From Hydrolagus colliei (lineage: Eukaryota): a DNA stretch of 48,760 bases. Position numbers and translations under genes: made by a program. The stretch's first letter is position 1. Each line of letters starts with the position of its first letter. The notes under the pieces were generated by a model that saw only the letters and a program-made list of their open reading frames with translations, was not told the origin of the DNA and ran no database searches. The DNA lies in NCBI GenBank assembly GCA_035084275.1, contig JAYJKW010000046.1, positions 62,001 through 110,760 of the forward strand, written 5' to 3'. Positions 1 to 48,760 of the stretch are shown here, piece after piece.

Positions 1-47
1 CGCACCCCCCCCCCCCCCCACTGTCGGCTTGTCGGACTCGAACTCTC

Positions 48-53
48 AATAAA
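48..53 (+). terminator. AATAAA poly(A) signal for the membrane-form transcript of a preceding cluster (cluster 0)
   Basis: Same context (ctgtcggcttgtcggactcgaactctcAATAAAcgatag) as the signal about 300 bp after TM2 in clusters 1-3. Confidence 0.7.
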
Positions 54-145
54 CGATAGAACTCAGTGAACTGTTGACTCCCTCTCTTTCCTGTTGCTCG
101 AGCCTCGAGTTCTGTGGGTGTCTTGACGTCTGACTGGGAGCTCCC

Positions 146-265
146 GCAGCTCAGTGGGTTAGAGCAACGCACTAGCTCGCCTTACAAGCCGCGAGAGAGA
201 GACCTGGGTTCGAATCCAGGCAGGTCAGGTCAGGAAGAGACCTCGGGACACGTTTCCTTACTCCA
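146..265 (+). mobile_element. tRNA-derived SINE head
   Basis: A-box-like gctcagtgggttagag and B-box GGTTCGAATCC (207-217), then aggtcagg and a CA tail; homologous copies at about 13656, 27363, 41395, 12148, 25903 and 39714. Confidence 0.75.
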
Positions 266-356
266 CACACATACACACAGACACACACACACATGCAGAC
301 ACACACACATACAGACTACATAGACACACACACAGACAGACACACACAGACACACA

Positions 357-675
357 CGCGAGTTTTAAACGGTAGAAACATAAGAACAATAATAAAGAAT
401 AATAATCCTGGCGTTTGGATATCGCGGCTTCTCCCATTTTATCGACCGTGTCTCGAAGCTCTTCACGGGATAGACCGTCGAGTGTGGTGACTGTGTGTAT
501 GTGTCTGGGGACCCAAATCTGATGATGTGAGAAGGGCTCAGTTCCTTATCCACAGGAAACACCTGCTCTCTCTGCCACTGAATTAGAATCTGTGCCTCTT
601 AATACTGACCTGACCTGAAAGCCGACCACTGGAGACTGGTTAAAAATACTCCAAGAAACAGCTCAAGCTGTGAAC
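357..675 (-). repeat. Left arm of inter-cluster inverted repeat (L2-tailed, DeuSINE/SacSINE1-like relic)
   Basis: Reverse complement of about 1865-2186; minus strand ends ...tgtgaagcgcttcgagac...gatatccaaacgccaggattattatt, an L2-type SINE tail. Family name is from recalled similarity only. Confidence 0.65.
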
Positions 676-1015
676 ACACACACTCACACACACTCACACA
701 CACACTCACACTCTCACTCACTCACACACACACTCACACACACACTCACACTCACTCACATTCACTCACACAGCCACACACACACACTCACTCGCACACA
801 CAGATACGCACACACACACCACACATACTCACGCACACACTCAACACACAGTCACACACAAACCATACACACAAATACACACACACGCACACTCCACACA
901 TACACACTCACACGCAAACCACACACACACACACACACCACACAGACTCACACGCAAACTCCACACACACACACACACTCCACACACACACACAAACACA
1001 AATACGCACACACGT
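676..1015. repeat. Imperfect (CA)n microsatellite
   Basis: Direct inspection; source of His/Thr-rich spurious ORFs. Confidence 0.95.
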
Positions 1016-1471
1016 ATTGGTGAGGGGGGTGGGGGTCAATCCCAGCTGTGTCCTGTGACAAGCCGTGGCCGCCGCTCGAACCCCCTGCTCCCCGCCAGCC
1101 ACCCCCTGATGGTCTCCCGTCCACTCGCGAGTCTCTCGAATCGGTGACGAGGCCCAGAGAGAAACAATAATCTCCCGAATTATATAGAAATCTAATAATC
1201 ACATTAATGTTAATAATCACCGATCCCGGCATTGGATACGGCGGCGTTTTGTTTTCGACGGCGTCTAGAAGCGCTTCGCGGGATAGACCGTCAAGTGTAG
1301 TGACTGTATGTACATGGATATATTTGAGGGAGAGAGAAACGCGGCAGCCGATTGCGCACGGCAGCGTCACCCACCCCCCCCCCCCCACACACACACACAC
1401 ACACACTCACTCACAGATTGAAATGACAGATTTTTTATCATAGGGGTATTTTTGGAGGGATTATTATTAGG

Positions 1472-1870
1472 CGTGTGTGTGTGAGTGAGTGTGTGTGTGT
1501 GTTGAGTGTGTCGGTGTGTGTGTGTCCAAGTGTGTGTGTGTGGAGTGTGAGTATGTGTAGAGTGTCTGTGTGCATATTTGTGTGTGTGTGTGGAGTTTGT
1601 GTGTGAGTATGTGTGTGTGTGTCTGTTTGAGTGCGAGTGAGTGTGAGTGCGTGCGAGTGTGTGTGTGTCTGTATGAGTGTGTGTGAGTATGTATATGAGT
1701 GTGTGTGTGCGTATTTGTGTGTGAGTGGGTGTGTGACTGAGTGCTTGTGTGTGTGTGTGTGCGAGTGAGTGTGTGTGTGTCTGTGTGAGTGAATGTGAAT
1801 GCGTGTGAGTGTGTGTAGTGTGTGTGTCTATGTGTGTGTGTGTGTGTGTATGTGCGAGTGTGTGTGTGTG
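1472..1870. repeat. Imperfect (TG)n microsatellite
   Basis: Direct inspection; mirror of the (CA)n tract at 676-1015. Confidence 0.95.
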
Positions 1871-2186
1871 TTGAAAGCTTGACCTGTTTGTTGGAGTATT
1901 TTTAACCAGTCTCCAGTGGTCGGCTTTCAGGTCAGGTCAGTATTAAGAGGCAGAGACTCTAATTCAGTGGCAGAGAGAGCAGGTGTTTCCTGTAGATAAG
2001 GAACTGAGCCATTCTCACATCATCACATTTGGGTCCCCAGACACATACACACAGTCACTACACTCGACGGTCTATCCTGTGAAGCGCTTCGAGACACGGT
2101 CGATAAGACGGGAGAAGCCGCGATATCCAAACGCCAGGATTATTATTATTTATTATTATTATGTCTCTACCGTTTAAAACTCGTGA
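1865..2186 (+). repeat. Right arm of inter-cluster inverted repeat (L2-tailed SINE relic)
   Basis: ggagtatttttaaccagtctccagtgg...ctaccgtttaaaactcgtg mirrors 357-675; recurs in every spacer. Confidence 0.65.
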
Positions 2187-2802
2187 AAAAATTAAGTTAA
2201 ATTAGTTAAATTGAATTAAATCCGCTTAATTTCGCTTCACGTTCCATCAAAAGCCAGAGTGGTTTTGTGAGGCGGACACACGCGGCTGTGTGTGTGTGTG
2301 TGTGTGTTTGTGTGTGGACGTGTGTGTGTGAGTGTGTCTGTGTGTATGTGTTTATTTGTGTGTACAGTGTATATATGTTTGAGCGTATGTTTGTAATAAT
2401 AATCATAATTATAATCCTCGCGTTTGATATCGCGGCTCATCACCTCTTATCCACGTCTCAAAGCGCTTCACAGAATAGACTGTCAAGTGTAGTGACTGTA
2501 TATATGTTTTGTGGGGAGAGCGAATCGCGATCGGCAGCCGATTGCACAAATCAGCGTCCCCCCCACCCTCCCACACACACACACGCAGCCAATGGTGGGT
2601 TGAAAATGACCAACTTTCATTGTTTTATTTTTATTATAGTGGGTTTGTTTTTGGAGGNNNNNNNNNNNNNNNNNNNNNNNNNNNNNNNNNNNNNNNNNNN
2701 NNNNNNNNNNNNNNNNNNNNNNNNNNNNNNNNNNNNNNNNNNNNNNNNNNNNNNNNNNNNNNNNNNNNNNNNNNNNNNNNNNNNNNNNNNNNNNAAGCTT
2801 TC

Positions 2803-2935
2803 GCCCTGACCTGACCTGATCTGCCTGGATTTGAAACACACAGATATATCATGCTTGCAAGGCAAGCGAGCGAGAGAGAGAGAGAGAGCAAGAGAGAGAG
2901 AGAGAGCGAGCGAGCGAGCGCTCTAACCACCGAGC
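2803..2935 (-). mobile_element. Antisense tRNA-derived SINE upstream of VH promoter
   Basis: ccctgacctgacctgatctgcctggatttgaa...ctctaaccaccgagc is the reverse complement of the SINE head, with a (GA)n expansion; present before all four V genes. Confidence 0.6.
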
Positions 2936-3119
2936 CACAGAAAGCTCCCACTATTGACACTCGTATTAATTAATATGAACTTTACTGCCGTCCAGGCAGA
3001 AGGTAAATTAATGATCAGTGCGGGGGTCAGAGGGAATGTGAGGTGTGACTCTCCCCCCCCCCCCCCACCTCCTTCACTGCCCTCCCCCCCCACATCCTTC
3101 ACCCCCCTCCCTACCCTCT

Positions 3120-3225
3120 CTCCGCCCCCCCTCTCTTCCTCCCTCCGCCCCCCTCCCCAATCAGCCCTGATACCTCATTGGTCCGTTCCCCAGACACCCG
3201 GCCTCGTCCCCCTGGTTAAATAGCA
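3120..3225 (+). promoter_or_regulatory. VH1 core promoter (GC boxes, CCAAT at 3157, ATTGG at 3177, TATA-like TTAAATA 3216-3222)
   Basis: Motifs conserved upstream of all four leaders, about 110 bp before the ATG; no ATGCAAAT octamer seen. Confidence 0.55.
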
Positions 3226-3333
3226 GCTCAGTGTGTAACAGACCCCATCTGTCCACCAGACAGCTCTCTATCTCTCGGCTGTTGTGGCTCAAACAAACAG
3301 GGCGTCAAACTCTGATACTTTGTCTGGGAAGCC

Positions 3334-3379
3334 ATGAGGTCCCTGATATCTCTCAGCCTCTTGCTGGCTCTCTTCTCAT
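3334..3379 (+). CDS. IGHV: Cluster 1 VH leader exon (MRSLISLSLLLALFS)
   Basis: gccATG context, 46-nt hydrophobic signal exon, phase-1 donor gtgagt. Confidence 0.92.
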
Positions 3380-3580
3380 GTGAGTCGGCGTTCGTCCTCG
3401 TCTAGCTTGCGTCCGTGCGTCTGTGCGTGTGTGTCTCTCTCTGTCTCTCTCTGTGTCCCTCTCTGTCTCTCTGTGTGTCCCTCTCTCTCTCTGTCTCCGT
3501 CTCTCTCTCTGTCTCCGCGTCCACGGATCTCGGTTCTCGCCGCAATTAACCTCGGGTCCCGTTTTTCTCGTTTCTCGCAG

Positions 3581-3886
3581 GCGTCCAGGGCGCTGTGGTG
3601 CTGACACAGCCGGCGACTCTAACCGGGAAGCCTGGCACGGCCGTGAGACTCACCTGTAGAACCAGCGGGTTCAATCTCGGCAGCTCCAACATGGACTGGA
3701 TCAGGCAGGTTCCTGGGAAAGGCTTGGAATGGATTGTTTATTACTACAGCTCATCCGACAATTCTTACGCGCCCGGCATTCAAAGCCGTGTCACTGTCAT
3801 CAAAGAGAATTCCAACAACATCTTCGATCTGATAATCAAAAGTCCGACAGTTCACGACACCGCCATATATTACTGTGCCAGAGACT
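3581..3886 (+). CDS. IGHV: Cluster 1 VH exon, unrearranged, open frame
   Basis: Acceptor ttctcgcag; VVLTQP..LTC..GF..W(I)[19 protein letters not shown]; 3' RSS CACAGTG 3887-3893, 23-nt spacer, ACAAATACT 3917-3925. Confidence 0.97.
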
Positions 3887-4538
3887 CACAGTGAGAGGAA
3901 CCTGGGCTGGCCTCCTACAAATACTCACACAAGCGAAGAGAGGTCCCACCCTCGACTGACTGACTGACTGGGGGGAAGTCAAGTCATGGTGTCAACACTG
4001 TGTCTGCAGCACAGAAAGGAAGGACGGGGGGGAAAACACGGGCTTCACATTGGAATGGATTCCTCGTCTCATTCCCCAAACCGAGACAGTGACCGGCGGT
4101 TCGATGGAGGGGAGTGAGGAGGGGAGTGAGGAGGGGAGTGAGTGAACGAGCTGCCTGTCTGTGCTGCGATATGCCGCCATTTCAGCCGGTAAGTGACTGT
4201 GTGGTTCTTCAGGAATGAGGTTGGATTGCGTTCCCCCCCCCCCCCCCCCCCCACCCACACAGACATTTTCATCCCACAGTTGGCTGTGTGTGGGGGACGC
4301 TGCCGCGTTTCGCTCTCCCACAAACACACAGTCAATTCACTTTACAGTATTTCCTGTGAAACGCTTTGAGACACAGTCTTGAAGACGTGAAAAGTATCGA
4401 TATCAAATGGAATTATTATTATTATTATTATCTGAGACTCTGTCCGGCATTAAAATAGCCCATTTCAGTGACTTTTCGCAGCCAGTGTAGAGAGAGCAGA
4501 GACCGAGGCCAGTATTTGTATGGGACTGTATCACTGTG

Positions 4539-4550
4539 TATACAGTGGGT
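4539..4550 (+). other. IGHD: Cluster 1 DH1 (TATACAGTGGGT), 12/22 RSS
   Basis: AGTATTTGT 4511-4519, 12 nt, CACTGTG 4532-4538; CACAATG 4551-4557, 22 nt, ACAAAAACC 4580-4588. Confidence 0.93.
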
Positions 4551-4845
4551 CACAATGCTACATACAGCCACTTCCTCATACAAAAACCTCAGCCACAGAC
4601 TCCGCAAGCCACTGTCCTCACAGCTACAGTCACAGCGGCCGATGGCGCACGGCAGCGTCCCCCACACACAGCCAACGTTGGGTTGAAAACGGTCCATTTT
4701 ATTATTATTGTGTGTGTTTTCTCGGAGGGATTGTTATCGGGCGCGTGTGTGTGTAGAGTCTGTGGGAGGGTTGTCGGAAACGCCAGGACAGTATTTGTGG
4801 GTTCAGCCTGAGCCTGAGGTTTGTGTCACAGTGTGTATCACTGTG

Positions 4846-4855
4846 TAACTGGAGT
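4846..4855 (+). other. IGHD: Cluster 1 DH2 (TAACTGGAGT), 12/12 RSS
   Basis: GGTTTGTGT 4818-4826, 12 nt, CACTGTG 4839-4845; CACAGCG 4856-4862, 12 nt, ACAAAAACC 4875-4883. Confidence 0.93.
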
Positions 4856-5292
4856 CACAGCGTTAACTGTCAATACAAAAACCCTCCAACAGCAAAACCT
4901 TCTCAATCTCTCCCACCGCCGGCTTGTGAGGGTCCCAATTAACGCTCGGAGAGTTGACGTGTGTATGAGGAGACCCACCACTGAGGAATTTTCAGCCGAT
5001 TTGACTTAAAAACACATGAAACGTCGTATTTTGAATCTCAAATCCGTGGGCGACAATCGCAATGGGGGCTGTTTTGTTGTCGGGAACACAGCAAGACACA
5101 GGCGTTTAACAACAGGCGAACGCAGATTGTTCTGTGCGATTGTTGTTGTTGGTGTTGGGAACATGACAGAGAGAGACGGTTCCCTGCGTTTTGTTTTTGG
5201 GGGAATATACCATTTGGAATAACAGATTGTTTGTGTGACCTGTCCTCACAGCAAGTTATTGTAGTGAGCAGACCACTGACTGAGGCACTGTG

Positions 5293-5340
5293 ACTATCTT
5301 GACTACTGGGGACAAGGGACCATGCTGACAGTGACTGACG
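5293..5340 (+). CDS. IGHJ: Cluster 1 JH (YLDYWGQGTMLTVTD)
   Basis: AGTTATTGT 5254-5262, 23 nt, CACTGTG 5286-5292; WGQG motif; donor gtaaga. Confidence 0.96.
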
Positions 5341-5679
5341 GTAAGAAACAATTGCGAACGAGCGAAAGAAAGAACGCGCTCACTCACTCACTCAATAATA
5401 ATCCGTCCAAAAAAAAAATTCCCACTGAAATAAAATTGGTTATTTTCAATCCACGGCTATTTGTAGGGAAGCTGCTGTGCGCAATTGGCTGCCGTGTTCG
5501 TCTCTCCCACAAAATATATTGTCAATTCAGTGTATTCTGTGCAGAGCTTTTGAGACGTTGATAAAATGTGAAAAGCTCGCAGTCAAATGCAATGATTATT
5601 ATTTAATGTTTGATATTTAATGTTTAATGTGTACGGTTTAGAGTTTAAATTTGAAAGTTCAGCATGTAGCATGTAGAAA

Positions 5680-6010
5680 GTAATATTTAAAATTAAAAAA
5701 TGTAACTTTTAAAATGGAAAATTTTAATTTTAAAATGGAAAATTTTAATTTTNNNNNNNNNNNNNNNNNNNNNNNNNNNNNNNNNNNNNNNNNNNNNNNN
5801 NNNNNNNNNNNNNNNNNNNNNNNNNNNNNNNNNNNNNNNNNNNNNNNNNNNNNNNNNNNNNNNNNNNNNNNNNNNNNNNNNNNNNNNNNNNNNNNNNNNN
5901 NNNNNNNNNNNNNNNNNNNNTTTACAATTTTTACAATTTTTACATTGTACATTGTACATTGTACATTGTACATTGTACATTTTAAATTTTAAATTTTAAA
6001 ATTGAAATTT
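5680..6010. repeat. AT-rich 7-bp-period tandem array in J-CH1 intron (partly gapped)
   Basis: (CATTGTA)n and (TTTTAAA)n; fully resolved homologue at 19470-19770. Confidence 0.85.
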
Positions 6011-7289
6011 AATGTCACATGTTACATGTAAAATTTATATGAATTATTTCATTATAATTATATTATTAGTATTATTGCTGGTATATTTTCGGTGGTTAGT
6101 GACTCCACCGCTGAAGTCACACTGACAGACTTCCTGCGATGTCTGATCGTGGTGATGCCGGCTGCTGATTGTGGGGGTACGATGGGGTCGGGAATTGTAT
6201 AAATACGTTTGAAACTTTTGCCGCGTGTGGGAATCAGGGCCTGAATGTTGTGGGATGAGCGAGTGGCAGCCTGTCTGATCGGTTCCAATCTGAATTTCAA
6301 TCGTTTGGTTAGTAGGAAGGAAAGAGGCTCGACCGGGGGAGAGGGGGGGAGACTGGGGTGGTGTGGGGGAGACTGAGAGTCAAGTGGGTTTACACTGCTG
6401 GGATGTCATTGCAAATACAGTCACTAAAACTGCTTGGATATTACAATAATATAATAATTTTAACATCTTATCGACTGTGTCTCAAAGCGCTTCACAGAAT
6501 AGACTGTCAAGTGTAGTGACTGTATATTTGTGGGAGAGTGAAACACGGCAGCCAATTGCGCACACACAGCCGTGGATTGAAAATCACAATTTTTATTGTT
6601 GTGGTTTCTTTTGGAGGGATGACTATAGGTGTCTGTGTCTGTGTGTGTGTGGAGCAAGCAAACTTGGCCCCAGGTCTCGCCCTGACCTGATCTGCCCGGA
6701 TTCGAACACAGGTCTTGCGCTTGCGAGGCGAGTGAGTGTCTCTAACCACTGAGCTTCAGGAGCTCAGAATTTCATTTCAATTTGATTTTCACGGCAATTG
6801 AGTGAGGCTTCCTCACAGCGCACAGTAGACACTAGAGGTCGTTGCTGCTCTACAATCATCTGGTTCCTGTTTCACACCAACTGATCGGCGGAGAAAACAC
6901 ACACAGATCTGATTTCAATCGAACACACAGCGTAAACTCTGTATAAGAGATCCAGGTGTTAGTAATGAGAACATTCCTTGCGTTAGACGTGGCGGCTTTT
7001 CACATCCGATCGACTGTGTCTCAAAGCGCTTCACAGAACAGACTGTCAATTGAAGTGACTGTACGTTTGTGGGCGAAACGCAGATTGAAGGCTCCATGTT
7101 GTGACGTGGAAGGACAGAGTGTGAGCTGGCTGGCCAGTCACCGAGAGCGAGAGAAAGGGACAGAGAGAGAGAGAGAGAGAGAGGGAGATAGAGCATCAGG
7201 CTGAGAGAAGGGGAGTGTTGAGTAACCTGTGGGTTATTCGACGGAAACAGTTTGCGTTTGAGATGTCAGGGTTCAGGCTGTGATTGAGT

Positions 7290-7695
7290 GTGAGACCTGA
7301 TTAGAAGAATCAGAGGTGATCTTATAGAAACCTATCAGATTATTAAGGGGCATTGACACAGTAGACAGTGGGAGACTGTCTCCCTTGGTTGGAGAAACCA
7401 TAACTAGAGGATCACAGTCTGAAGATGAGGGGTCAGCCTTTTCACACTGAGTTGAGGAAAAACATCTTCACTCAAGAGGATAGTCAATGGATGGAATTCT
7501 CTACCCCAAAGGCCTATCGATACTCAGTCAGTCCCTCGACATACTTAAGACGGAGATTGATGAGATTTCTTGAGGATAAAGGGATTAAGAGGAGATGGGG
7601 ACAAGGCGGAGGGTGGGGGGAGTTAGATTAGAAGATCAGCCGTGATCTTATTGAATGGCAGGGCGGGCTCGAGGGGCTGAATGGCCTACTCCTGT
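7290..7695 (+). mobile_element. CR1-clade LINE 3' fragment
   Basis: Degenerate ORF2 C-terminus (RGDLIETYQIIKG; LRKNIFTQ) and 3' end gatcagccgtgatcttattgaatggc...gaggggctgaatggcctactcctg; copies at about 21045-21450 and 34975-35305. Confidence 0.8.
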
Positions 7696-7811
7696 GTGTG
7701 TATTGACGCGTGTGGCAGGTCTCGTCCAGTGTATCTGTGGCGTCTGACCCAATTGGACAAGAGCGGAAACCTGGTGGGCGGGGTCTAACTTTGCTCTCTT
7801 CGCGTTTCCAG

Positions 7812-8120
7812 ACACCCCTAGAGCTCCCAGTCTTTACGCCCTCCAGCCCACCTGCGGGTCGCCCCCCCTCGAAGGCCAACTCACGTTCGGGTGTCTGGCC
7901 GCCGACTACTCCCCCGAGCCGGCCACTTTCAGCTGGACCTCCAATGGACATCCCATCACCAACGAAGGCCAAGTCAAGAGTTACCCCCCAGTGCTAAACA
8001 AGGCCGGTTTCTACACAGCCAGCAGCCAGCTGACCATCCAGGCATCTCAGGTGGACATCTCCAATCTCGGTTGTCAGGTCAAAAGCAGCAGCTGGTCAGG
8101 CGAGAATATCATTTTCCCAG
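7812..8120 (+). CDS. IGHM: Cluster 1 Cmu1 exon
   Basis: Acceptor tttccag, donor gttagt; manual translation DTPRAPSLYALQPTC..LTFGCLAADYSPEPATFSW..SSQLTI..NLGCQVK..IIFP is open and homologous to ORF 35292-35735. Confidence 0.92.
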
Positions 8121-8269
8121 GTTAGTTTTGTGTTCACAAAGGTACAGAGACAATCAGACAACAACAACACCAACATTACCCCTGTGTAGAGCCTTTCACG
8201 CGAGGCTTGAGGGGCTGAATGGCCTACTTCTGCTCCTAGTGCTTATGCTCGTATGACGTTGAGCCTAAT

Positions 8270-8580
8270 GGGCCAGCCTTTCCATCCGTCCACCGCCCCC
8301 CAATCTCTGGAACTCCATCCCTCAGTCCCTCCGCCTAGCTCCCTCCCTCCCTCTCTCCATCCCTCTCTCCCTCCCTGGCCTCCTTCAAGTCTCGCCTCAA
8401 GACCCTCCTCTTCGATGCGCCCATCGGCAAATCCTAATCTCCCCACACCACACCCCCTCCCCACCCGCCCGCACCCCCCACCCCCCACACCCCACCCCAT
8501 CACATTGTCCTCCGCCTTGGGACGTCCTCCTGACGTGAAAGTCCCCGTCTGTGCGTATCTAATTTTGTCCTTGTTGTTGT
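8270..8580 (+). mobile_element. L2 LINE 3' relic in CH1-CH2 intron
   Basis: LWNSIPQSLR..FKSRLKTLLFD-like remnant, then cgccttgggacgtcctcctgacgtgaaag and a (TTG)n tail, matching the L2 end at 28826-29285. Confidence 0.7.
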
Positions 8581-8585
8581 CGCAG

Positions 8586-8918
8586 TTGTAGACCCGCCGC
8601 CACCGTCCTCGCCCCCAGTTGTGCTCCTCACACAGACGTCCCCAGAAGACATCGCCTTCGCCAACCAGGCCACCCTTCTCTGCTCAGTCTCTGGCTTCAG
8701 TCCGGACAAGCTCAGGGTTGACTGGCTGAAGGACGGGAAGGCCTTGGCCTCAGGCTTCAAGAGCTCCCCTTCGCTCAATGACAATGGGACCTTCAGTACT
8801 GACAGCCGGCTGATCATCCCAGCCACAGCCTGGACGAAAGACATGGTTTATTCCTGCAAAGTCACCCATGACCCCTCCCAGACCCTCATCATCAGGAACA
8901 TCACCAATTGGAGCCCAG
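8586..8918 (+). CDS. IGHM: Cluster 1 Cmu2 exon (alternative in-frame acceptor at 8592)
   Basis: VVDPPPPSSPPVVLLTQ..ATLLCSVSGFSP..VDWLKDG..YSCKVTH..NITNWSP; donor gtaggg. Confidence 0.92.
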
Positions 8919-9413
8919 GTAGGGTTGGGATCTCCTGTATCTCAGTGGTACAGAGCACTCGCTCTCTCTCACACACACACACACTCACAATAACCCAGTC
9001 CCCACACACACTCACACTCACTCACACAAACTCACTCATGCACACACACACACACTCTCACACATGCACACACACACACAAACACACACTCTCACACATG
9101 CACACACGCACACACTCACAAACGCACACATGCACACTCACATACACACACTCACACACACACATGCACACTCACGTACACACACACCTACTCACAATAA
9201 CCCAGTCCTACACACAAACGCACAACTAGAATCACCCAGCACCCCCCCCCACACACTCACACTAAGTGTGTTGTGTGTGCTACATGTGTGCTGCGTGTGT
9301 GTGCGTACGTGTGTGTGTGTGTTAGGGGGGAGAGTATGGAAACTTGCCCAGGGTCTCCCCCTGCCCTGCCCTGACCTTGACCCTGACCTGATCTGCCCGG
9401 ATTCGAACCGCAG

Positions 9414-38099: not shown

Positions 38100-40194
38100 C
38101 GTGTTTCCCATTGGCTTCACCCGTTGGCTGCTCCTTTTGTCGGCACCTCTCTCCCCCTACCCCTTACCCTCCCCCTATCCTCCTCTCCTCCCCTCCCCTC
38201 CCTCTCCTCCCACCTCCCCCCATCCCTAACCTTGACCAATTTGAAGTCATGGAAAGAAAGTAACTCCAATAAAAAATCTTTATTGTAAGTTATGAGTCAA
38301 GATCCCAGAGGGGAAGGTTTCATTCAATTAGTAATAATTATAATAATAATAATAGTCCCGGCGTTTGATATCGCGGCTTTTCACGTCTTCTAGACTGTGT
38401 CTCAAAGCGCTTCACAGGATATACCGTAAAGTGTAGTGACTGTACATATATTTGTCGGAGAGCGAAACAGCAGCATCCCACCCCCACACCACCCACCCCT
38501 CCCACCCACCACAGCTTTACACACATACTCAGCCACACTCGGACATAGCCAAATAAACACACCGATTCACACACAGACACACTCACACAGAGACACAATC
38601 GCACACACACAAACACGCGTTCACCCAAACACTCTCCGATACATCCAGATTGACACACATTCACACACACTACTGTTTACGCATGCCCAGCTAGGGTCAC
38701 ACGCACACACACGCGCGCGTGCGCACACAGTCACAGGACTCACACTCATTCACACACTCACCCGTACTCTCACACACACTCTCAGCCACCCAGGCTCACA
38801 CCCACAATACATTCACACACACAGGCTCACACACACTCACATACATCACAACTTACACACAGTCACACACACTGCTGTGGACCCATGACCAGCGAGGCTC
38901 ACACACACACACACACAGACTCACACTCACTCACACACTCACCCATACGCTCACAATCAATCTCATCTACCAGGGCCACATGCAATAATACACACACACA
39001 CACAGGCCAATACACACATACTCTCTTGCCCATCCAGATTTACACACATTCACACACACCCAGCTAGGATCTCACACACACAGACTCACGATTATGAAAG
39101 CCTACACGCATCCACACACACTATCAACCATTTCACACTCACACACACTCACACACTCACACACTCACACCTACTCACAATAACCCAGTCCCCCATACAC
39201 ACAATCTTAATCACCCAGCACACACACACTCGCACACTCACTCACTCACTCACTCACTCTAACACACAGTCACTCACACACACACTCACACACGAACATT
39301 CACAACTACCCAAGCTCGCACATACACACGCACACATACACACAGTCACACCCACACACACAATCATAATCCCCCAGCCCACACAAACACACACACAAAC
39401 ACACTCCTGCACTCACACACACAGTCACTCACACACACACTCACACACAGACACACACTCACACACACACACTCACACACACTCACACACAGACACACAC
39501 GTCTCCCCCTTTCCTTCCATCGCTGTTACACACACAGAGTAAAGTCAGCGTTTTATTTGAAGTGAATCTGAAGTGATTTTCGACAATAAACTCCACGTCA
39601 TTGTTCCCTAAGATACGAAACTTCACCCCGACTGTGAGGGACAGTGTCTGATCATCTCCCCCCCCCCCCCCAACCCCCAAATCAGCCTTACACAACCCAC
39701 AGGCAGCAAAGTCCTGTAGCTCAGTGGGTTAGAGACACTCACTCACTCTTACAAGCGTGAGAGGGAGAGAGAGACCTGGGTTCGAATACAGGCAGATCAG
39801 GTCAGGGGGAGACCTTGGGACAAGTTTCCTTACTCCACACACGCACAAACACACACATACAGTCACCACACATACAGTCACCACACACAGACACACTCAC
39901 ACACACAGACACACACTCACACCAAATAATAATCCCTTTTTAATAAAATACGGTCATTTTCAACCCACTGTTGGCTCTGTGTGTGTGTGTGTGTGGAGGG
40001 GGGGGGGGGGGGGGCTGCCGTGCGCAATCGGCTGCCGATCGCGTTTTGCTCTCCCCACAGATATACACACAGTCACTACACTAGACAGTCTATCCCGCGA
40101 AGCCGGTGAGACGCGAGAAGCGGCGACATCAAACGCCAGGATTATTGTTATTAATATTAATATTATTATATATCTCCGGGTTGCATCCGCACAG

Positions 40195-40325
40195 ATTCCT
40201 CAGCCGAGATGACGTTGGAGGGTTTCTCCTCAGATGAAAGTGGCAACCTCTGGCCTACAGCTTCCACCTTCATCATCCTCTTCTTCCTGAGTATGTTCTA
40301 CAGCGCCACCGTCACTCTGATTAAG
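40195..40325 (+). CDS. IGHM: Cluster 3 TM1 exon
   Basis: ..[39 protein letters not shown]; donor gtgagg. Confidence 0.95.
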
Positions 40326-40986
40326 GTGAGGAGACGGCAACTCACGAACGAACGAACAAACGAACGAACAAGTGAACTCACTCACTCACTCAGTCGCGAG
40401 CAAGCGAGCGAACGAACGAACGAGTGACCTCACTCACTCACTCACTCACTCACTCGTGAGTGAGTGAACTCATTCACAAGTGAACTTACCCACGAGTGAA
40501 CTCACTCACTCACGAGTGAACTCGCTCACTCGCTCGCCTTACAAGCGTGAGCGAGAGACCTGTGGTTCGAACCCAGGCAGGTCAGGTCAGGGCGGAACCN
40601 NNNNNNNNNNNNNNNNNNNNNNNNNNNNNNNNNNNNNNNNNNNNNNNNNNNNNNNNNNNNNNNNNNNNNNNNNNNNNNNNNNNNNNNNNNNNNNNNNNNN
40701 NNNNNNNNNNNNNNNNNNNNNNNNNNNNNNNNNNNNNNNNNNNNNNNNNNNNNNNNNNNNNNNNNNNNNNNNNNNNNNNNNNNNNNNNNNNNNNNNNNNN
40801 NNNNNNNNNNNNNNNNNNNNNNNNNNNNNNNNNNNNNNNNNNNNNNNNNNNNNNNNNNNNNNNNNNNNNNNNNNNNNNNNNNNNNNNNNNNNNNNNNNNN
40901 NNNNNNNNNNNNNNNNGACACAGACACACACACACGAACACACAGAGGCTGAAATTATTAATCATATCTTTCATTTTATTTTCCAG

Positions 40987-40995
40987 GTGAAATGA
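40987..40995 (+). CDS. IGHM: Cluster 3 TM2 exon (VK*)
   Basis: ttccag|GTGAAATGA; AATAAA at 41296. Confidence 0.92.
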   Translation: MK

Positions 40996-43900
40996 ATCTC
41001 TTCACTTCAGCTTCACGGACGAGCCTCGCGTGTGTGTGTGTGTCTGTGTATATGTGTGTGTCTGTCTATATGTGTGTGTGTCTATGTAGATGTGTGTGTG
41101 TATTGATCGACCGTGCCTCCTGCTGCCCTCCTGTCTCTCCCCCCTTTCCTATTCTCCCCCAGGGCCCTGCCCTGACTGTCCAGACCCTCGGGACGTCCCC
41201 CTGACGTGAGAGGCTCTGTCTGTACCAGTGTGGTTGTGTTGCTATTGTCGTTGTTGTCGCCACAGACACTGTCGGCTTGTCGGACTCGAACTCTCAATAA
41301 ACGATAGAACTCAGTGAACTGTTGACTCCCTCTCTTTCCTGTTGCTCGAGCCTCGAGTTCTGTGGGTGTCTTGACGTCTGACTGGGAGCTCCCGCAGCTC
41401 AGTGGGTTAGAGCAACGCACTAGCTCGCCTTACAAGCCGCGAGAGAGAGACCTGGGTTCGAATCCAGGCAGGTCAGGTCAGGGAGAGACTTCGGGACNNN
41501 NNNNNNNNNNNNNNNNNNNNNNNNNNNNNNNNNNNNNNNNNNNNNNNNNNNNNNNNNNNNNNNNNNNNNNNNNNNNNNNNNNNNNNNNNNNNNNNNNNNN
41601 NNNNNNNNNNNNNNNNNNNNNNNNNNNNNNNNNNNNNNNNNNNNNNNNNNNNNNNNNNNNNNNNNNNNNNNNNNNNNNNNNNNNNNNNNNNNNNNNNNNN
41701 NNNNNNNNNNNNNNNNNNNNNNNNNNNNNNNNNNNNNNNNNNNNNNNNNNNNNNNNNNNNNNNNNNNNNNNNNNNNNNNNNNNNNNNNNNNNNNNNNNNN
41801 NNNNNNNNNNNNNNNNNNNNNNNNNNNNNNNNNNNNNNNNNNNNNNNNNNNNNNNNNNNNNNNNNNNTTTAACTTGATTTAACTAATGTAATTTTAATTT
41901 TTCGCGAGTTTTAAACGGCAGAGACATAATAATAATAAATAATAATAATCCTGGCGTTTGGATATCGCGGCTTCTCCCGTCTTATCGATCGTGTCTCGAA
42001 GCGCTTCACAGGATAGACCGTCGAGTGTAGTGACTGTGTGTATGTGTCTGGGGACCCAAATCTGATAATGTGAGAAGGGCTCAGTTCCTTATCCACAGGA
42101 AACACCTGCTCTCTCTGCCACTGAATTAGAGTCTCTGCCTCTTAATACTGAAATGACCTGAAAGCCGACCACTGGAGACTGGTTAAAAATACTCCAACAA
42201 GCAGCTCAAGCTTTCAACACACACACACTCACACACTCACACACACGCACTCAGTCACACACTAACTCACACACAAATACGCACACATACACCACACACA
42301 CACACACACTCATACACATACTCACACACACACTCACACAGACACACACAAACACACTCGCACGCACTCACACTCGCTCACGCAGACACACACACTCACA
42401 CACAAACTCCACACACACACACAAACACGCATTCACATTCACTCACACAGACACACACACACACACACTGACTCGCACACACAACTACGCACACACATAC
42501 CACACATACTCACACACACTCAACACACACACACACTCCACATACACACACACACTCACACGCAAACTCCACACACACACACACACTCCACACACACACA
42601 AATACGCACACACGTATTGGTGGCGGGGTGGTGGGGGTCAATCCCAGCTGTGTCCTGTGACAAGCCGTGGCCGCCGCTCGAACCCCCTGCTCCCCGCCAG
42701 CCACCCCCTGATGGTCTCCCGTCCACTCGCGAGTCTCTCGAATCGGTGACGAGGCCCAGAGAGAAACAATAATCTCCCGAATTATATAGAAATCTAATAA
42801 TCACATTAATGTTAATAATCACCGATCCCGGCATTGGATACGGCGGCGTTTTGTTTTCGACGGCGTCTAGAAGCGCTTCGCGGGATAGACCGTCAAGTGT
42901 AGTGACTGTATGTACATGGATATATTTGAGGGAGAGAGAAACGCGGCAGCCGATTGCGCACGGCAGCGTCACCCACCCCCCCCCCCCACACACACACACA
43001 CACACACTCACTCACAGATTGAAATGACAGATTTTTTATCATAGGGGTATTTTTGGAGGGATTATTATTAGGCGTGTGTGTGTGAGTGAGTGTGTGTGTG
43101 TGTTGAGTGTCTGTGTGTGTGTGGAGTGTGTGTGTGCGTATTTGTGTGTGTGTGGAGTTTGCGTGTGAGTGTGTGTTGAGTGTGTGAGTGTGTGGAGTGT
43201 GTTTGTGAATATGTGTAGAGTGTGTTTGCGTATTTGTGTGTGTGTGTGGATTTTGTGTGTGTGTGTGTCTGTGCGAGTGTGTGTGTGTCTGTGTGACTGT
43301 GCGTGTGCGTATTTGTGTGTGAGAGTGTGTGTGTGTGTTGAAAGCTTGAGCTGTTTGTTGGAGTATTTTTAAACAGTCTCCAGTGGTCGGCTTCAAGGTC
43401 AGGTCCGTATTAAGAGGCAGAGACTCTAATTCAGTGGCAGAGAGAGCAGGTGTTTCCTGTGGATAAGGAACTGAGCCCTTCTCACATTATCAGATTTGGG
43501 TCCCCAGCCACATATACACAGTCACTACACTCGACGGTCTATCCTGTGAAGCGCTTCGAGACACGGTCGATAAGACTTGAGAAGCCGCGATATCCAAACG
43601 CCAGGATTATTATTATTTATTATTATTACGTCTCCACCGTTTAAAACTCGCGAAAAAATTAAGTTAAATTAGTTAAATTGAATTAAATCCGCTTAATTTC
43701 GCTTCACGTTCCATCAAGGCCGGGGTGGTTTTGCGTGGCGCACAGTCACGGCTGTGGGTGTGTGTGATTGTGTGTGGACGTGTGTGTGTGAGTGTGTCTG
43801 TGTGTTTATTTGTGTGTACAGTGTATGTATGTTTGAGTGTACGTTTGTAATAATAATCATAATAATAATCCTCGCGTTTGATATCGCGGCTCATCACCTC

Positions 43901-44024
43901 TTATCCACGTCTCAAAGCGCTTCACAAAATAGACTGTCAAGTGTAGTGACTGTATATATGTTTTGTGGGGAGAGCGAAACGCGATCGGCAGCCAATTGCA
44001 CACAGCAGCGTCCCCCCCGTCCGC

Positions 44025-44055
<31 letters not shown>

Positions 44056-44726
44056 ACACAGCCAACAGTGGGTTGAAAATGACCAACTTTTATTATTTTA
44101 TTTTTATTATACTGGGTTTGTTTTTGGAGGCATTATTATTAGGCGTGTGTGTGTCTGTCTGTGTGTTTGTGTGTCTCTGTGTGCGTGTGTGTCTGTGTGC
44201 GTGGAGTAAGGAAACTTGCCCAAGGTTTCGCCCTGACCTGACCTGATCTGCCTGGATTTGAAACACACAGATCACTCATGCTTGCAAGGCAAGCGAGCGA
44301 GCGAGAGAGAGAGAGAGAGAGAGCAAGAGAGAGAGAGAGTGGGCGAGTGCTCTAAACACCGAGCCACAGAAAGCGCCCACTATTGACACTCGTATTAATT
44401 AATATGAACGTTTCTGCCGTCCAGGAAGAAGTTAAATTAATGATGAGTGCGGGGGTCAGAGGGAATGTGAGGTGTGACTCTCCCCCCCGCCCACCTCGTT
44501 CACTCCCCTCCCTCCCTGCCACCCCCCCCCCCCCCCCCCCCCGCCTCCCCAATCAGCCCTGATACCTCATTGGTCCGTTCCCCAGACACCTGGCCTCGTC
44601 CCCCCTCCTTAAATAGCAGCTCAGTGTGTAACAGACCCCATCTGTCCACCCGACAGCTGTCTTTTTCTCGGCTGTTGTGGCTCAAACAAACAGGGCGTCA
44701 AACTCTGATACTTTGTCTGGGAAGCC

Positions 44727-44772
44727 ATGAGGTCCCTGATATCTCTCAGCCTCTTGCTGGCTCTCTTCTCAT
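44727..44772 (+). CDS. IGHV: Cluster 4 VH leader exon
   Basis: MRSLISLSLLLALFS, donor gtgagt. Confidence 0.9.
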
Positions 44773-44906
44773 GTGAGTCGGCGTTCGTCCTACCCTAGTC
44801 TCGCTGTTTTCGCGTGCGTCCGTGTGTCTCTCTCTGTCTCCGCGTCCACGGATCTCGGTTCTCGCCGTAATTTAACCTCGGGTCCTATTTTTCTCGTTTC
44901 TCGCAG

Positions 44907-45218
44907 GCGTCCAGGGCGCTGTGGTGCTGACACAGCCGGCGACTCTAACCGGGAAGCCTGGCACAGCCGTGAGACTCACCTGTAAAACCAGCGGGTTCGA
45001 TCTCAGCGGCTATTACATGCACTGGATCAGGCAGTTGTCCTGGGAAAGGCTTGGAATGGCTCCTTAAGTATCGCACTCCACCCGCTAAATACACTGCTTA
45101 CGCGCCCGGCATTCAAAGCCGTGTCACTGTCATCAAGAGGATTCCAACAACATCTTCGATCTGATCATCAACAGTCCGACAGTTCACGACACCGCCATAT
45201 ATTACTGTGCCAGATGGT
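44907..45218 (+). pseudogene. IGHV: Cluster 4 VH with +1 and -1 frameshifts (apparent pseudogene)
   Basis: cagttgtcct instead of caggttcct (about 45035) leads to TAA at 45065-45067; atcaagag instead of atcaaagag (about 45135); RSS intact (CACAGTG 45219, 23 nt, ACAAATACT 45249). Sequencing error is not excluded. Confidence 0.7.
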
Positions 45219-45876
45219 CACAGTGAGAGGAACCTGGGCTGGCCTCCTACAAATACTCACACAAGCGAAGAGAGGTCCCACCCTCGACTGACTGACTGGG
45301 GGAAGTCAAGTCATGGTGTCAACACTGTGTCTGCAGCACAGAAAGGAAGGACGGGGGAGAAAACACGGGCTTCGAATTGGAATGGATTCCTCGTCTCATT
45401 CCCCAAACCGAGACAGTGACTGGCGGTTCGATGGAGGGGAGTGAGGATGGGAGTGAGGAGGGGAGTGAGAAGGTGAGTGAGTGAACGAGCTGCCTATCTG
45501 TGCTGCGATATCCGCCATTTCAGCCGGTAAGTGACTGTGTGGTTCTTCAGGACTGAGGTTGGATTGCGTTCCCCCCCCCCCCCCCCCCCCCCCCACCCAC
45601 ATAGACATTTTCATCCACAGTTGGCTGTGTGTGGCGGACGCTGCCGCGTTTCGCTCTCCCACAAACACACAGTCAATTCACTTTACAGATTTCCTGTGAA
45701 ACGCTTTGAGACACAGTCAGGAAGATGCAAAAAGTCACGACATCAAATAGAAGAATTATTATTATTATCTGAGACTCTGTCCGGCATTAAAATAGCCAAT
45801 TTCAGTGACTTTTGGCAGCCAGTGTAGAGAGAGCAGAGACCGAGGCCAGTATTTGTATGGGGACTGTATCACTGTG

Positions 45877-45888
45877 TACACAGTGGGT
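45877..45888 (+). other. IGHD: Cluster 4 DH1 (TACACAGTGGGT), 13/22 RSS with altered nonamer
   Basis: AGTATTTGT 45848, 13-nt spacer, CACTGTG 45870; CACAATG 45889, 22 nt, ACAAAATCC 45918. Confidence 0.85.
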
Positions 45889-46190
45889 CACAATGCTACA
45901 TACAGCCACTTCCTCATACAAAATCCTCAGCCACAGACTCCGCAAGCCACTGTCCTCACAGCTACAGTCACAGCGGCCGATGGCGCACGGCAGCGTCCCC
46001 CACACACAGCCAACATTGGGTTGAAAACGGCCCATTTATTATTATTGTGTGTGTTTTCTCGGAGGGATTGTTATCGGGCGCGTGAGTGTGTAGAGTCTGT
46101 GGGAGGGAGGTAGGGTTGTCGGAAACGTCAGGACAGTATTTGTGGGTTCAGCCTGAGCCTGAGGTTTGTGTCACAGTGTGTATCACTGTG

Positions 46191-46200
46191 TAACTACAGG
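46191..46200 (+). other. IGHD: Cluster 4 DH2 (TAACTACAGG), 12/12 RSS
   Basis: GGTTTGTGT 46163, CACTGTG 46184; CACAGCG 46201, 12 nt, ACAAAAACC 46220. Confidence 0.93.
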
Positions 46201-46640
46201 CACAGCGTTAACTGTCAATACAAAAACCCTCCAACAGCAAAACCTTCTCAATCTCTCCCACCGCCGGCTTGTGAGGGTCCCAATTAACGCTCGGAGAGTT
46301 GACGTGTGTATGAGGAGACCCACCACTGAGGAATTTTCAGCCGATTTGACTTAAAAACACATGAAACGTCGTATTTTGAATCTCAAATCCGTGGGCGACA
46401 ATCGAAATGGGGGCTGTTTTGTTGTCGGGAACACAGCAAGACACAGTCGTTTAACAACAGGCGAACGCAGATTGTTCTGTGCGGTTGTTGTTGTTGTTGG
46501 TGTTGGGAACATGACAGATAGAGACGGTTCCCTGCGTTTTGTTTTGTGGGAAATTTACCATTTGGAATAACAGATTGTTTGTGTGACCTGTCCTCACAGC
46601 AAGTTATTGTCGTGAGCAGACCACTGACTGAGGCACTGTG

Positions 46641-46679
46641 ATTACTGGGGACAAGGCACCATGCTGACAGTGACTGACG
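46641..46679 (+). CDS. IGHJ: Cluster 4 JH, 9 nt shorter at the 5' end (YWGQGTMLTVTD)
   Basis: AGTTATTGT 46602, 23 nt, CACTGTG 46634; donor gtaaga. Confidence 0.92.
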
Positions 46680-47274
46680 GTAAGAAACAATTGCGAATGA
46701 GCGAAAGAAAGAACGCGCTCACTCACTCACTTAATAATAATCCGTCCAAAAAAAAATTCCCACTGAAATACAATTGGTTATTTTCAATCCACGGCTATTT
46801 GTGGGGAAGCTGCTGTGCGCAATTGTCTGCCCCGTTCGGCTCTCCCACAAAATATATAGTCTATTCAGTGTATTCTGTGCAGAGCTTTTGAGACGTTGAT
46901 AAAACGTGAAAAGCGCGAAGTCAAATGCAATGATTATTATTTAATGTTTGATATTTAATGTTTACTGTTTAGAGTTTAAATTTGAAAGTTCAGCATGTAG
47001 CATGTAGAAAGTAACATTTAAAATTAAAAATGTAACTTTTAAAATGGAAAGTATTTTNNNNNNNNNNNNNNNNNNNNNNNNNNNNNNNNNNNNNNNNNNN
47101 NNNNNNNNNNNNNNNNNNNNNNNNNNNNNNNNNNNNNNNNNNNNNNNNNNNNNNNNNNNNNNNNNNNNNNNNNNNNNNNNNNNNNNNNNNNNNNNNNNNN
47201 NNNNNNNNNNNNNNNNNNNNNNNNNNNNNNNNNNNNNNNNNAAAATACTTTCCATTGTCTCAAAGCGCTTCACA

Positions 47275-47415
47275 GAAATTCGAAATTCGAAATTCGAAAT
47301 TTAAAATTTTAACTTTTAAATTTTTTGATTTTTGATTTTTGATTTTTGATTTTTGATTTTTGATTTTTGATTTTTGATTTTTGATTTTGAAATTTGAAAT
47401 TTGAAATTTGAAAGT
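47275..47415. repeat. AT-rich 7-bp-period array (AAATTCG, GATTTTT, GAAATTT)n
   Basis: Direct inspection; same position in the J-C intron of cluster 4. Confidence 0.9.
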
Positions 47416-48760
47416 TAATGTCACATGTTACATTTTAATTTATATGAATTATTTCATTATAATTATATTATTCGTATTATTGCTGGTATATTTTCGGTGG
47501 TTAGTGACTGCACAGCTGAAGTCACACTGACAGACTTCCTGTGATGTCTGATCGTGGTGATGCCGTCTGCTGATTGTGGGGGTACGATGGGGTCGGGAAT
47601 TGTATAAATACGTTTGAAACTTTTGCCGCGTGTTGGGAATCAGGGCCTGAATGTTGTGGGATGAGCGAGTGGCAGCCTGTCTGATCGGTTCCAATCGGAA
47701 TTTCAATCGGTTGTTTAATAGGAAGGAAAGAGGCTTGACCGAGGGAGAGGGGGGGAGACTGGGGTGGTGGTGGGGGAGACTGAGATTCAAGTGGGTTTAC
47801 ACTGCTGGGATATCATTGAAAATACAGTCACTAAAACTGCTTGGATATTACAATAATATAATAATTTTCAAATCTTATCGACTGTGTCTCAAAGTGCTTC
47901 ACAGAATAGACTGTCAAGTGTAGTCACTGTATATTTGTGGGAGAGTGAAACACGGCAGCCAATTGCGCACAGCAGCGTCCCCCACACACTATCGTGGATT
48001 GAAAATCACAATTTTTATTATTGTGGTTTCTTTTGGAGGGATGACTATAGGTGTCTATGTGTGTGTCTGTCTGTGTGTGTGTGTGTCTGTGACTATGTGT
48101 ATGTATGTGTGTCTGTGACTATGTGTGTGTGGAGCAAGCAAACTTGGCCCCAGGTCTTGCCCTGACCTGATCTGCCTGGATTCGAACACCGGTCTTGCGC
48201 TTGCGAGGCGAGTGAGTGTCTCTAACCACTGAGCTTCAGGAGCTCAGAATTTCATTTCAATTTGATTTTCACTGCAATTGAGTGACACTTCCTCACAGCG
48301 CACAGTAGACACTAGAGGCCGTTGCTGCTCTACAATCATCTGGTTCCTGTTTCACACAAACTGATCGGCGGAGAAAACACACACAGATCTGATTTCAATC
48401 GAACACACAGCGTAAACTCTGTATAAGAGATCCAGGTGTTAGTAATGAGAACAATCCTTGCGTTAGACGTGGCGGCTTTTCACATCCGATCGACTGTGTC
48501 TCAAAGCGCTTCACAGAATAGACTGTCAATTGAAGTGATTGTATGTTTGTGGGCGAAACGCAGATTGAAGGCTCCGTGTTGTGACGTGGAAGGACAGAGT
48601 GTGAGCTGGCTGGCCAGTCACCGAGAGCGAGAGAAAGGGACACAGAGAGAGAGAGAGAGAGAGAGAGGGAGATAGAGCATCAGGCTGAGAGAAGGAGAGT
48701 GTTGAGTAACCTGTGGGTTATTGGACGGAAACAGTTTGCGTTTGAGATGTCAGGGTTCAA

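Follow-up and report, generated by a model that had tools for sequence, protein, structure and literature searches.

In textbooks, the immunoglobulin heavy-chain (IgH) clusters of sharks stand as the example of miniloci that rearrange independently. The DNA analysed here, a stretch of 48,760 nucleotides (nt) from contig JAYJKW010000046.1 that we call the window, carries IgM heavy-chain clusters that follow one another with a period of about 14 kb, and it raises the question of whether clusters packed so closely still behave as separate loci or whether they join their segments across cluster borders. An earlier note on this DNA had proposed the second answer, with the array as an intermediate between cluster and translocon organisation. 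On balance, we consider it probable, with some reserve, that the array is a tandem of self-contained IgM heavy-chain miniloci of a holocephalan, which has been shaped by exchange between its members and which rearranges mainly within each cluster.

Layout of the clusters and their gene segments

The earlier note had counted at least five miniloci, and tandem clusters do exist, but only three of them are complete (U1, 3334-13562; U2, 17142-27269; U3, 31134-41301). Of a fourth (U4, from 44727) only the 5' third lies inside the window, and of the preceding cluster (U0) merely the membrane-form 3' untranslated region (3'UTR, about 250 bp) is left at the left edge. In this U0 end (1-270, AATAAA at 48-53), nt 19-249 are 99-100% identical to the sequence behind the second transmembrane (TM) exon, TM2, of U1-U3 (13528-13758, 27235-27445 and 41267-41497). 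All features of the clusters lie on the + strand, head to tail. The four leader ATGs (3334, 17142, 31134 and 44727), which have near-identical surroundings, were confirmed in position, common orientation and a period of 13.6-14.0 kb; the leader-to-leader distances are 13,808, 13,992 and 13,593 bp, each containing 580-834 N of estimated length. From the TM polyadenylation (poly(A)) signals AATAAA of U0-U3 (48, 13557, 27264 and 41296) to the next leader ATG there are 3,286, 3,585, 3,870 and 3,431 bp, and the introns between J and the first constant exon (CH1) have 2,471 (U1), 2,434 (U2) and 2,279 bp (U3); the previous estimates of about 3.5 and 2.5 kb deviate by no more than a few hundred bp from these measurements (3.29-3.87 kb and 2.28-2.47 kb). 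The span of one cluster, from leader ATG to TM poly(A) signal, is about 10.1-10.2 kb. With the V and C products of U2 as tblastn queries over both strands, the matches were four V exons and three sets of exons for CH1-4 and TM, and nothing beyond these; all lie on the + strand, with no match on the − strand and no orphan V, D, J or C.

Each unit has an upstream region of its own and contains one VH gene with a split leader, D1, D2 and JH, followed by four Cmu exons that include a secretory tail and by two TM exons. This content corresponds to the VH-D1-D2-JH-Cmu minilocus of cartilaginous fish, in which V bears a recombination signal sequence (RSS) with a 23-nt spacer, two D segments and one JH are co-oriented, and the C gene is private to the cluster. 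Other organisations do not fit. First, a translocon would pool V segments above shared D, J and C, whereas V-D-D-J-C alternate strictly here. Second, dispersed miniloci of the nurse-shark type would lie at least about 100 kb apart, whereas 3.3-3.9 kb separate the poly(A) signal from the next leader, given roughly correct gap sizes. Third, germline-joined clusters (VD-J or VDJ) would have lost RSSs, whereas all RSS pairs are kept in four of four units; every V, D1, D2 and J bears its own RSS and the units are unrearranged, as had been claimed. The elasmobranch frame in which the array had been placed has to be given up, since the closest IgH matches point to a chimaeroid (holocephalan) lineage. 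The best matches of the C-region query are IgH of Hydrolagus colliei (67%), IgH of Callorhinchus milii (54%) and nurse-shark mu (41%), and in the V-protein search the best match among V-only entries is from Callorhinchus (72%).

The RSS plan V-23 / 12-D1-22 / 12-D2-12 / 23-J, for which the spacers were counted, is found in all units with small exceptions, so the earlier statement on spacer lengths holds. It is also the plan of the horn shark. The V RSS is CACAGTG-23-ACAAATACT (3887-3925, 17663-17701, 31666-31704 and 45219-45257 in U1-U4). D1, with 12 nt, lies between AGTATTTGT-12-CACTGTG and CACAATG-22-ACAAAAACC (elements 4511-4588, 18292-18369, 32305-32382 and 45848-45926), its coding part being 4539-4550 in U1 (TATACAGTGGGT), 18320-18331 in U2, 32333-32344 in U3 and 45877-45888 in U4. 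D2, with 10 nt, lies between GGTTTGTGT-12-CACTGTG and CACAGCG-12-ACAAAAACC (elements 4818-4883, 18607-18672, 32620-32685 and 46163-46228), with coding parts at 4846-4855 in U1 (TAACTGGAGT), 18635-18644 in U2, 32648-32657 in U3 (TAACTACAGG) and 46191-46200 in U4. JH follows AGTTATTGT-23-CACTGTG (RSS and JH at 5254-5340, 19046-19132, 33056-33142 and 46602-46679; coding parts 5293-5340, 19085-19132, 33095-33142 and 46641-46679). The exceptions are the D1 3' heptamer CACGATG in U3 and, in U4, a D1 5' spacer of 13 nt, the D1 3' nonamer ACAAAATCC and a JH of 39 nt, which is 9 nt shorter. Across the units D2 occurs in two variants and D1 in three, and J is identical in U1-U3. In U2, the distance from the V heptamer to J is 1,422 bp, and all four segments fit within 1.42 kb. 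An isolated perfect heptamer CACTGTG with no recognisable nonamer is also present about 110 bp 3' of the V RSS in four of four units (3996, 17779, 31783 and 45323).

The V genes begin with leader exons at 3334-3379, 17142-17187, 31134-31179 and 44727-44772 (46 nt in the U2 annotation), followed by leader introns whose lengths differ between units. The V exons of U1, U2 and U3 are open (3581-3886, 17357-17662 and 31360-31665; 306 nt in U2), and the V product matches the Pfam V-set (E = 9e-15). In pairwise comparison, V1, V2 and V3 show 18-26 nt differences and 11-16 amino-acid changes. The differences are densest in the complementarity-determining regions (CDRs), CDR1 (27-33% of positions) and CDR2, compared with 3-4% in framework region (FR) 1. 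For example, CDR1 reads SSNMD in U1, SNSMS in U2 and SYGMH in U3. Judged by this distribution, V1-V3 are distinct, selected V genes. Together with the leader-intron lengths and CH1 of U3 (92% identical to U1/U2), they mark the units as separate paralogues and not as a single locus represented several times. The V exon of U4 (44907-45218) is disrupted, its frame being shifted by +1 in FR2 and by −1 in FR3, and two stops come into frame as a result. Its frame-disrupted V, 13-nt D1 5' spacer, variant nonamer and shorter J occur together, and U4 as written may be a pseudogene or decaying member of the array, or may be poorly assembled.

Exchange between clusters and continuity of the assembly

The history of the units was read from their four V-J regions (2795-5752, 16603-19544, 30597-33545 and 44217-47057). 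All three possible four-taxon partitions are supported, by 13-23 sites each, and the supporting sites lie in blocks. In the promoter, 13 informative sites group U1+U4 against U2+U3, and in the leader intron five sites group U1+U3 against U2+U4. The V exon switches between the U1+U4 and U1+U3 groupings. Of the 18 sites that extend from D2 into the J-C intron, 17 place U1 with U2 and U3 with U4. Only 15 partition runs were counted, compared with 37.4 expected, and none of 20,000 shuffles gave so low a number. On the evidence of these aligned sites, the blocks do show that the clusters exchanged sequence in the germline while the CDRs of their V genes diverged. The simplest biological reading would be that gene conversion or unequal crossing-over took place repeatedly within a tandem array, and the array as a whole would have arisen and been maintained by the same two processes acting between neighbouring units. 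The array also serves as direct sequence evidence of how such a family evolves, with patchwork conversion homogenising introns and C exons while the CDRs stay different.

A separate case is a tract that runs from just 5' of J past CH4, about 7 kb in all, in which U1 (5140-12094) and U2 (18932-25846) differ by only two substitutions and one 14-bp microsatellite indel. The flanks of this tract are 90-97% identical, and both of its ends lie within gap-free contigs. Conversion or duplication in the very recent past may have produced it, or else short reads of the two units may have been merged into one consensus. We also considered U1 and U2 as alleles in their entirety, and this was rejected: over their first 500 bp, which take in the leader exon and intron and the greater part of the V exon, identity is no more than 90%, and their CDRs are different.

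The state of the assembly decides how far the tandem order can be trusted. The window contains 13 N runs of 129-370 N each, and not six as listed earlier. None of the 13 is inside an exon, and therefore no reading frame depends on a gap. The N runs were left unfilled, and only the colinearity of their flanks and the lengths of the intervals were used. All flanks (200 bp) are colinear and in the same orientation on a paralogous unit, and where the paralogue is gap-free the interval across the gap is 1-175 bp, which is comparable to the N lengths. The gaps recur at three places, namely the CH4-TM1 intron (U1 and U2), the TM1-TM2 intron (U1-U3), which is never bridged gap-free, and a site just 3' of the TM poly(A) signal (U1-U3), beside microsatellites and an element resembling a tRNA-derived short interspersed element (SINE). 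The last place is bridged only in U0 (249 to 357), where the gap-free contig 1-2657 carries the TM 3'UTR with its poly(A) signal and, attached to it, 2.3 kb of spacer. In three other contigs (15771-25401, 27736-36626 and 41868-47057), the homologous spacer continues without a gap into V2, V3 and V4, and in this way gap-free contigs tile every junction type except the TM1-TM2 intron. Stretches resembling tRNA beside the gaps were rejected as tRNA genes, as they are degenerate SINE heads without an ARAGORN match.

Several of these features weigh against the array as we read it. No route from a TM exon to the following V is free of N runs, so that the order and number of the units rest on scaffolding, and the contigs with TM2 are flanked by gaps and only about 555-585 bp long. 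The N lengths vary, which suggests that the scaffold was built from short reads; in such an assembly, merged near-identical paralogues or chimeric contigs could imitate both the 7-kb tract of identity and part of the mosaic blocks. Taken further, the clusters could be real IgM clusters whose order, copy number or spacing was made by scaffolding similar paralogues or haplotypes, the U1/U2 tract being one locus written twice. The density of gaps in 48.8 kb, their recurrence at homologous places next to SINE and microsatellite sequence, the unbridged TM1-TM2 intron and the 99.97% identity of U1 and U2 over about 7 kb all speak for such an artefact. However, contig 1-2657 ties the poly(A) region to a spacer that is itself continuous with V in three other contigs. 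The four spacers are mutually distinct (82-99% identical, with indels of at most about 340 bp), and therefore each junction has its own sequence. In addition, the V genes differ in their CDRs, a difference of 10% in V is too large for alleles, and both ends of the identity tract lie in contigs that also bear unit-specific sequence. We regard a scaffolding artefact of this extent as improbable. The head-to-tail arrangement itself is very likely real, while the number and order of the units are less secure.

Probable rearrangement within clusters and possible joins between them

For the expression of such an array, it matters whether segments are joined within or between clusters. The earlier note had stressed that RSSs are compatible across clusters. 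This is formally right, as V of one unit to D1 or D2 of the next, D1 to the next D2 and D2 to the next J all obey the 12/23 rule by deletion, but it is nothing special, being true of any co-oriented clusters on one chromosome. Only the distance between clusters is special in this array. Within a cluster the partners lie 657, 303 and 440 bp apart, compared with about 14.5 kb to the nearest partner in the next cluster, which is 22-33 times farther. The germline sequence gives no sign of the somatic inter-cluster joining that had been proposed. The V-C shuffling suggested as a source of diversity would add little, because D2 and D1 occur in only two and three variants and J is identical in U1-U3. 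The proposed switch-like exchange between J-C introns found no support either: Tandem Repeats Finder (TRF) detected no switch-region-type repeats (long G-rich tandem pentamers) in the J-C intron, and the only tandem repeat there is an AT-rich 7-mer minisatellite of about 300 bp (TAATTTT, TACATTG; 19470-19765).

In lymphocytes, each cluster would most likely rearrange mainly within itself, as in sharks; mostly intra-cluster assembly is to be expected because of the proximity of the partners and the shark precedent. Joins between adjacent clusters would be a minority permitted by the 12/23 rule, limited by how often two neighbours are open to RAG in one cell. In the nurse shark, rearrangement takes place within the minilocus and inter-locus joining is described as 'rare, if it exists', since 97 intermediates included a single possible exception (PMC2435157), and reviews describe rearrangement in cartilaginous fish as almost exclusively within clusters (PMC5192425, PMC4279169). 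Two further points have to be set beside the gaps on the unfavourable side. The expectation of mainly intra-cluster rearrangement is extrapolated from an elasmobranch with loci at least 120 kb apart, where cluster independence is discussed alongside the wide separation of the loci and the absence of inter-locus joining is tied to it by the authors (PMC2435157). Moreover, no insulator-like element could be demonstrated in the window, which has no match to the CTCF consensus CCASYAGRKGGCRSY with up to one mismatch; with up to two mismatches there are two matches, below the 5.9 expected by chance.

The opposite possibility is that neighbouring clusters, with just 3.3-3.9 kb from the end of one to the V of the next, are opened together and that RAG often joins V or D of one cluster to D or J of the next, or replaces the downstream V through an embedded TACTGTG heptamer, which would lead to V-C shuffling and editing. 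Orientation and the geometry and sequence of the RSSs are the same across the units, so RAG cannot tell the clusters apart by sequence, and the next partner is only about 14.5 kb away. Shark segments join in no fixed order, so that partly joined intermediates keep a 5' 12-RSS, and one apparent inter-locus join was seen in nurse-shark thymocytes (PMC2435157). Closely linked light-chain (IgL) clusters of zebrafish are reported to show inter-cluster rearrangement (PMC3014032), and trans-rearrangements of Ig V to T-cell receptor (TCR) delta are common in sharks (PMC12227049). However, the far closer intra-cluster partners (0.30-0.66 kb) and the reviews cited above argue against frequent joining of this kind, the near-invariance of D2 and J between units leaves only a small gain in diversity, and a finished VDDJ has no RSS left to edit save a cryptic heptamer. 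We consider frequent joining between neighbours unlikely. It is likewise doubtful that the 3.5-kb spacing abolishes the autonomy of clusters in chimaeras, with a measurable share of IgM chains coming from deletional joins with the neighbouring cluster or from V replacement. If it were so, the array would work as a present-day stage between the cluster and the translocon form, and heavy-chain exclusion would have to act on the whole array instead of on each cluster.

Compared with known systems, the units which we read as self-contained miniloci are most similar to the elasmobranch IgM miniloci (nurse shark G1-G5, horn shark), with co-oriented segments a few hundred bp apart within 2 kb, four Cmu exons and two TM exons, but they are far more compact. 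The J-Cmu1 intron has 2.3-2.5 kb here, compared with about 11 kb in the bamboo shark and, together with a segment spacing of 400 bp, 6.3-6.8 kb in the nurse shark (PMC2435157). The cluster spans about 10 kb, compared with about 23 kb from V to TM in the bamboo-shark cluster that we fetched as a comparator, which has no second cluster within 10 kb downstream; in the catshark comparator the C gene alone takes 23.7 kb. From the end of a cluster to the next V there are 3.3-3.9 kb. Nurse-shark IgM loci are 'at least 120 kb apart' (PMC2435157), which bears out for this species the spacing of about 100 kb that the earlier note gave for elasmobranchs, and the separation here is 30-40 times smaller. 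The zebrafish IgL clusters, (V-J-C)n, also are many, small and closely linked, but they belong to a light chain of another lineage, have no D, and often carry an inverted V that leads to inversional joins (PMC3014032). The IgH translocon of tetrapods and teleosts shares the RSS logic and the Cmu exon plan; in contrast, pooled V segments that share D, J and C downstream are absent here, each V being equipped with a set of its own.

Rast et al. in 1998 reportedly described a conventional IgM heavy chain and unjoined clusters in Hydrolagus colliei. For the inter-cluster spacing in holocephalans no published figure was found in our full-text search, outside of which the key older ratfish IgH literature lies. 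In chromosome-level assemblies of elasmobranchs (2025), IgM, IgW and IgNAR clusters lie together near TCR alpha/delta (PMC12227049), and the array resembles these in having same-isotype clusters together on one chromosome. That work concerns elasmobranchs, and its main text contains neither a 14-kb periodic array nor a holocephalan one, spacing being given in a supplementary table. It calls the genomic distribution of clusters 'not well known' and proposes cluster linkage as the seed of a translocon, so the idea of a transition from cluster to translocon had been put forward before. In the literature that we could retrieve, no holocephalan array with a 14-kb period is described, although prior knowledge of it is possible.

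The array can be a natural experiment on cluster autonomy, as it keeps the shark gene plan, with RSSs alike in its units, at a spacing of 3.3-3.9 kb and thereby tells two candidate causes apart, distance and control intrinsic to the cluster. The independence of nurse-shark clusters has been used to argue that heavy-chain exclusion needs no long-range recombination or locus contraction (PMC2435157). The diagnostic differences in V, D1, D2 and CH1 between U1/U2 and U3 make a test of autonomy feasible. If the tandem order is confirmed, the array is also relevant to the possible origin of a translocon locus from clusters.

Constant exons, spacers and repeats

The constant exons of U1-U3 can be read as one chain. 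The spliced J-CH1-CH2-CH3-CH4 frame is open in all three (phase 1 splicing in U2), and the C product matches four Pfam C1-set domains (E = 5e-64). CH1 is located at 7812-8120, 21567-21875 and 35422-35730, CH2 at 8592-8918, 22347-22673 and 36175-36507 (with the 5' extension described below), and CH3 at 9444-9725, 23199-23480 and 36990-37271. CH4 with the secretory tail and its stop is at 10174-10559, 23929-24314 and 37714-38099. The tail is of the mu type and carries the motif GKPSFVNLSLVLMDNANGCQ with a penultimate Cys in U1-U3, ending in SSGKPSFVNLSLVLMDNANGCQ before the stop in U2. An internal donor G|GTAAACC in CH4 (10497, 24252 and 38037) leads to TM1 (12621-12742, 26378-26499 and 40204-40325) and TM2 (13246-13254, 26979-26987 and 40987-40995), which encodes only VK and the stop. 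The secretory AATAAA (10728, 24483 and 38268) lies 169 nt past the secretory stop, and the TM AATAAA about 280 nt past TM2 (both in U2).

Compared with the H. colliei IgH chain domain by domain, identity is 90% for leader plus V, 84% for CH1, 78% for CH2, 55% for CH3 and 60% for CH4, the last two domains being no nearer to this chain than to Callorhinchus. The chains share the J motif and a Pro-rich stretch at the CH1/CH2 boundary, and differ in CH3 and CH4 and in the Cys at the CH2/CH3 junction. The Cmu described here may be either a divergent subclass or an exon-level mosaic, or it may come from another species of chimaeroid. It does not represent a heavy-chain-only IgM without a true CH1, as its first C exon aligns to CH1 of H. 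colliei and keeps the N-terminal Cys (PTCGSPP).

CH1 of U3 is 92% identical in nt to that of U1/U2, 8% of positions being different. It keeps two extra Cys (NLCC, VICIS), like the ratfish cDNA (NLCC, DICFP), and both are missing from CH1 of U1/U2 (NLGC, NIIFP). Such a joint loss would be expected if the two Cys paired with each other in a disulfide bond. The CH2/CH3 boundary (8918/9444, 22673/23199 and 36507/36990) reads NWSPEVGVS without a Cys, and a Cys is present at this junction in IgM of ratfish (ECLGE) and elephant shark (CPDCPP). Beyond the CH1 N-terminal Cys and the tail Cys, the cysteines of U1/U2 are intradomain only. Covalent linkage between heavy chains may therefore be different in this subclass.

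Between an upstream acceptor (ttgtag|) and the conserved start of CH2, there is an in-frame Pro/Ser-rich stretch (8592-8618, 22347-22373 and 36175-36207), which reads DPPPPSSPP in U1/U2 (27 nt) and DPPSPLPSSPP in U3 (33 nt); the ratfish counterpart is VQPSPP. In U3, the AG of the downstream acceptor is mutated to AA, and because U3 lacks this AG the upstream acceptor is probably the real one. Its use would probably give a short hinge-like segment, as in the ratfish.

In the region of about 700 bp before each leader (e.g., 16440-17141), a TATA-like TTAAATAG and an ATTGG box can be recognised, the former about 120 bp 5' of the U3 leader. No exact copy of the Ig octamer (ATGCAAAT/ATTTGCAT) is present in the window, and the sequences 5' of the leaders do not contain one even with a single mismatch; the only intronic match at seven of eight positions is TTGCAAAT at 6409 and 20164. 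The J-C intron of U4 (46680-48760, with N at 47058-47241) ends at the window edge. A search of the whole window with Rfam (gathering thresholds) and ARAGORN gave no matches.

The inter-cluster spacers (3.3-3.9 kb) are rich in repeats, and each contains a large inverted repeat. In the U0/U1 spacer (271-3333; N at 2658-2794), the arms are 359-1011 and 1545-2183, with (AC)n/(GT)n and SINE-like repeats. The U1/U2 spacer (13563-17141; N at 13759-13956 and 15639-15770) is about 340 bp shorter than the others and has arms at 14088-14428 and 15781-16121. In the U2/U3 spacer (27270-31133; N at 27461-27735), the arms (27836-28157 and 29781-30102; 322 nt, 95% complementary) come with (AC)n at 28183-28517, (GT)n at 29463-29750 and a SINE-like element at about 28830-29260. 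The U3/U4 spacer (41302-44726; N at 41498-41867) has arms at 41877-42483 and 43075-43678. One arm is extended by (AC)n and the other by (GT)n, and the loop between them, 1-1.6 kb long, holds a SINE-like element. The whole might represent a paired insertion of repeats, or else a structure prone to recombination. At a homologous place in three of the four spacers, an identical CTCF-like CATCAGGGGGTGGCTGG was found on the − strand (1095-1111, 28601-28617 and 42697-42713), two mismatches from the consensus. It is missing from the U1/U2 spacer, which lacks about 340 bp there. We take it as a lead, not as insulator evidence. Finally, a short dispersed repeat with the 39-nt core AAGCGCTTCACAGRATAGACYGTCRAGTGTAGTRACTGT, of which no copy is expected by chance, occurs at 25 sites or about seven per unit (e.g., 2461, 6485, 14222, 20240, 27970, 34111 and 41999), among them sites in the J-C intron, 3' of CH4 and in the spacers.

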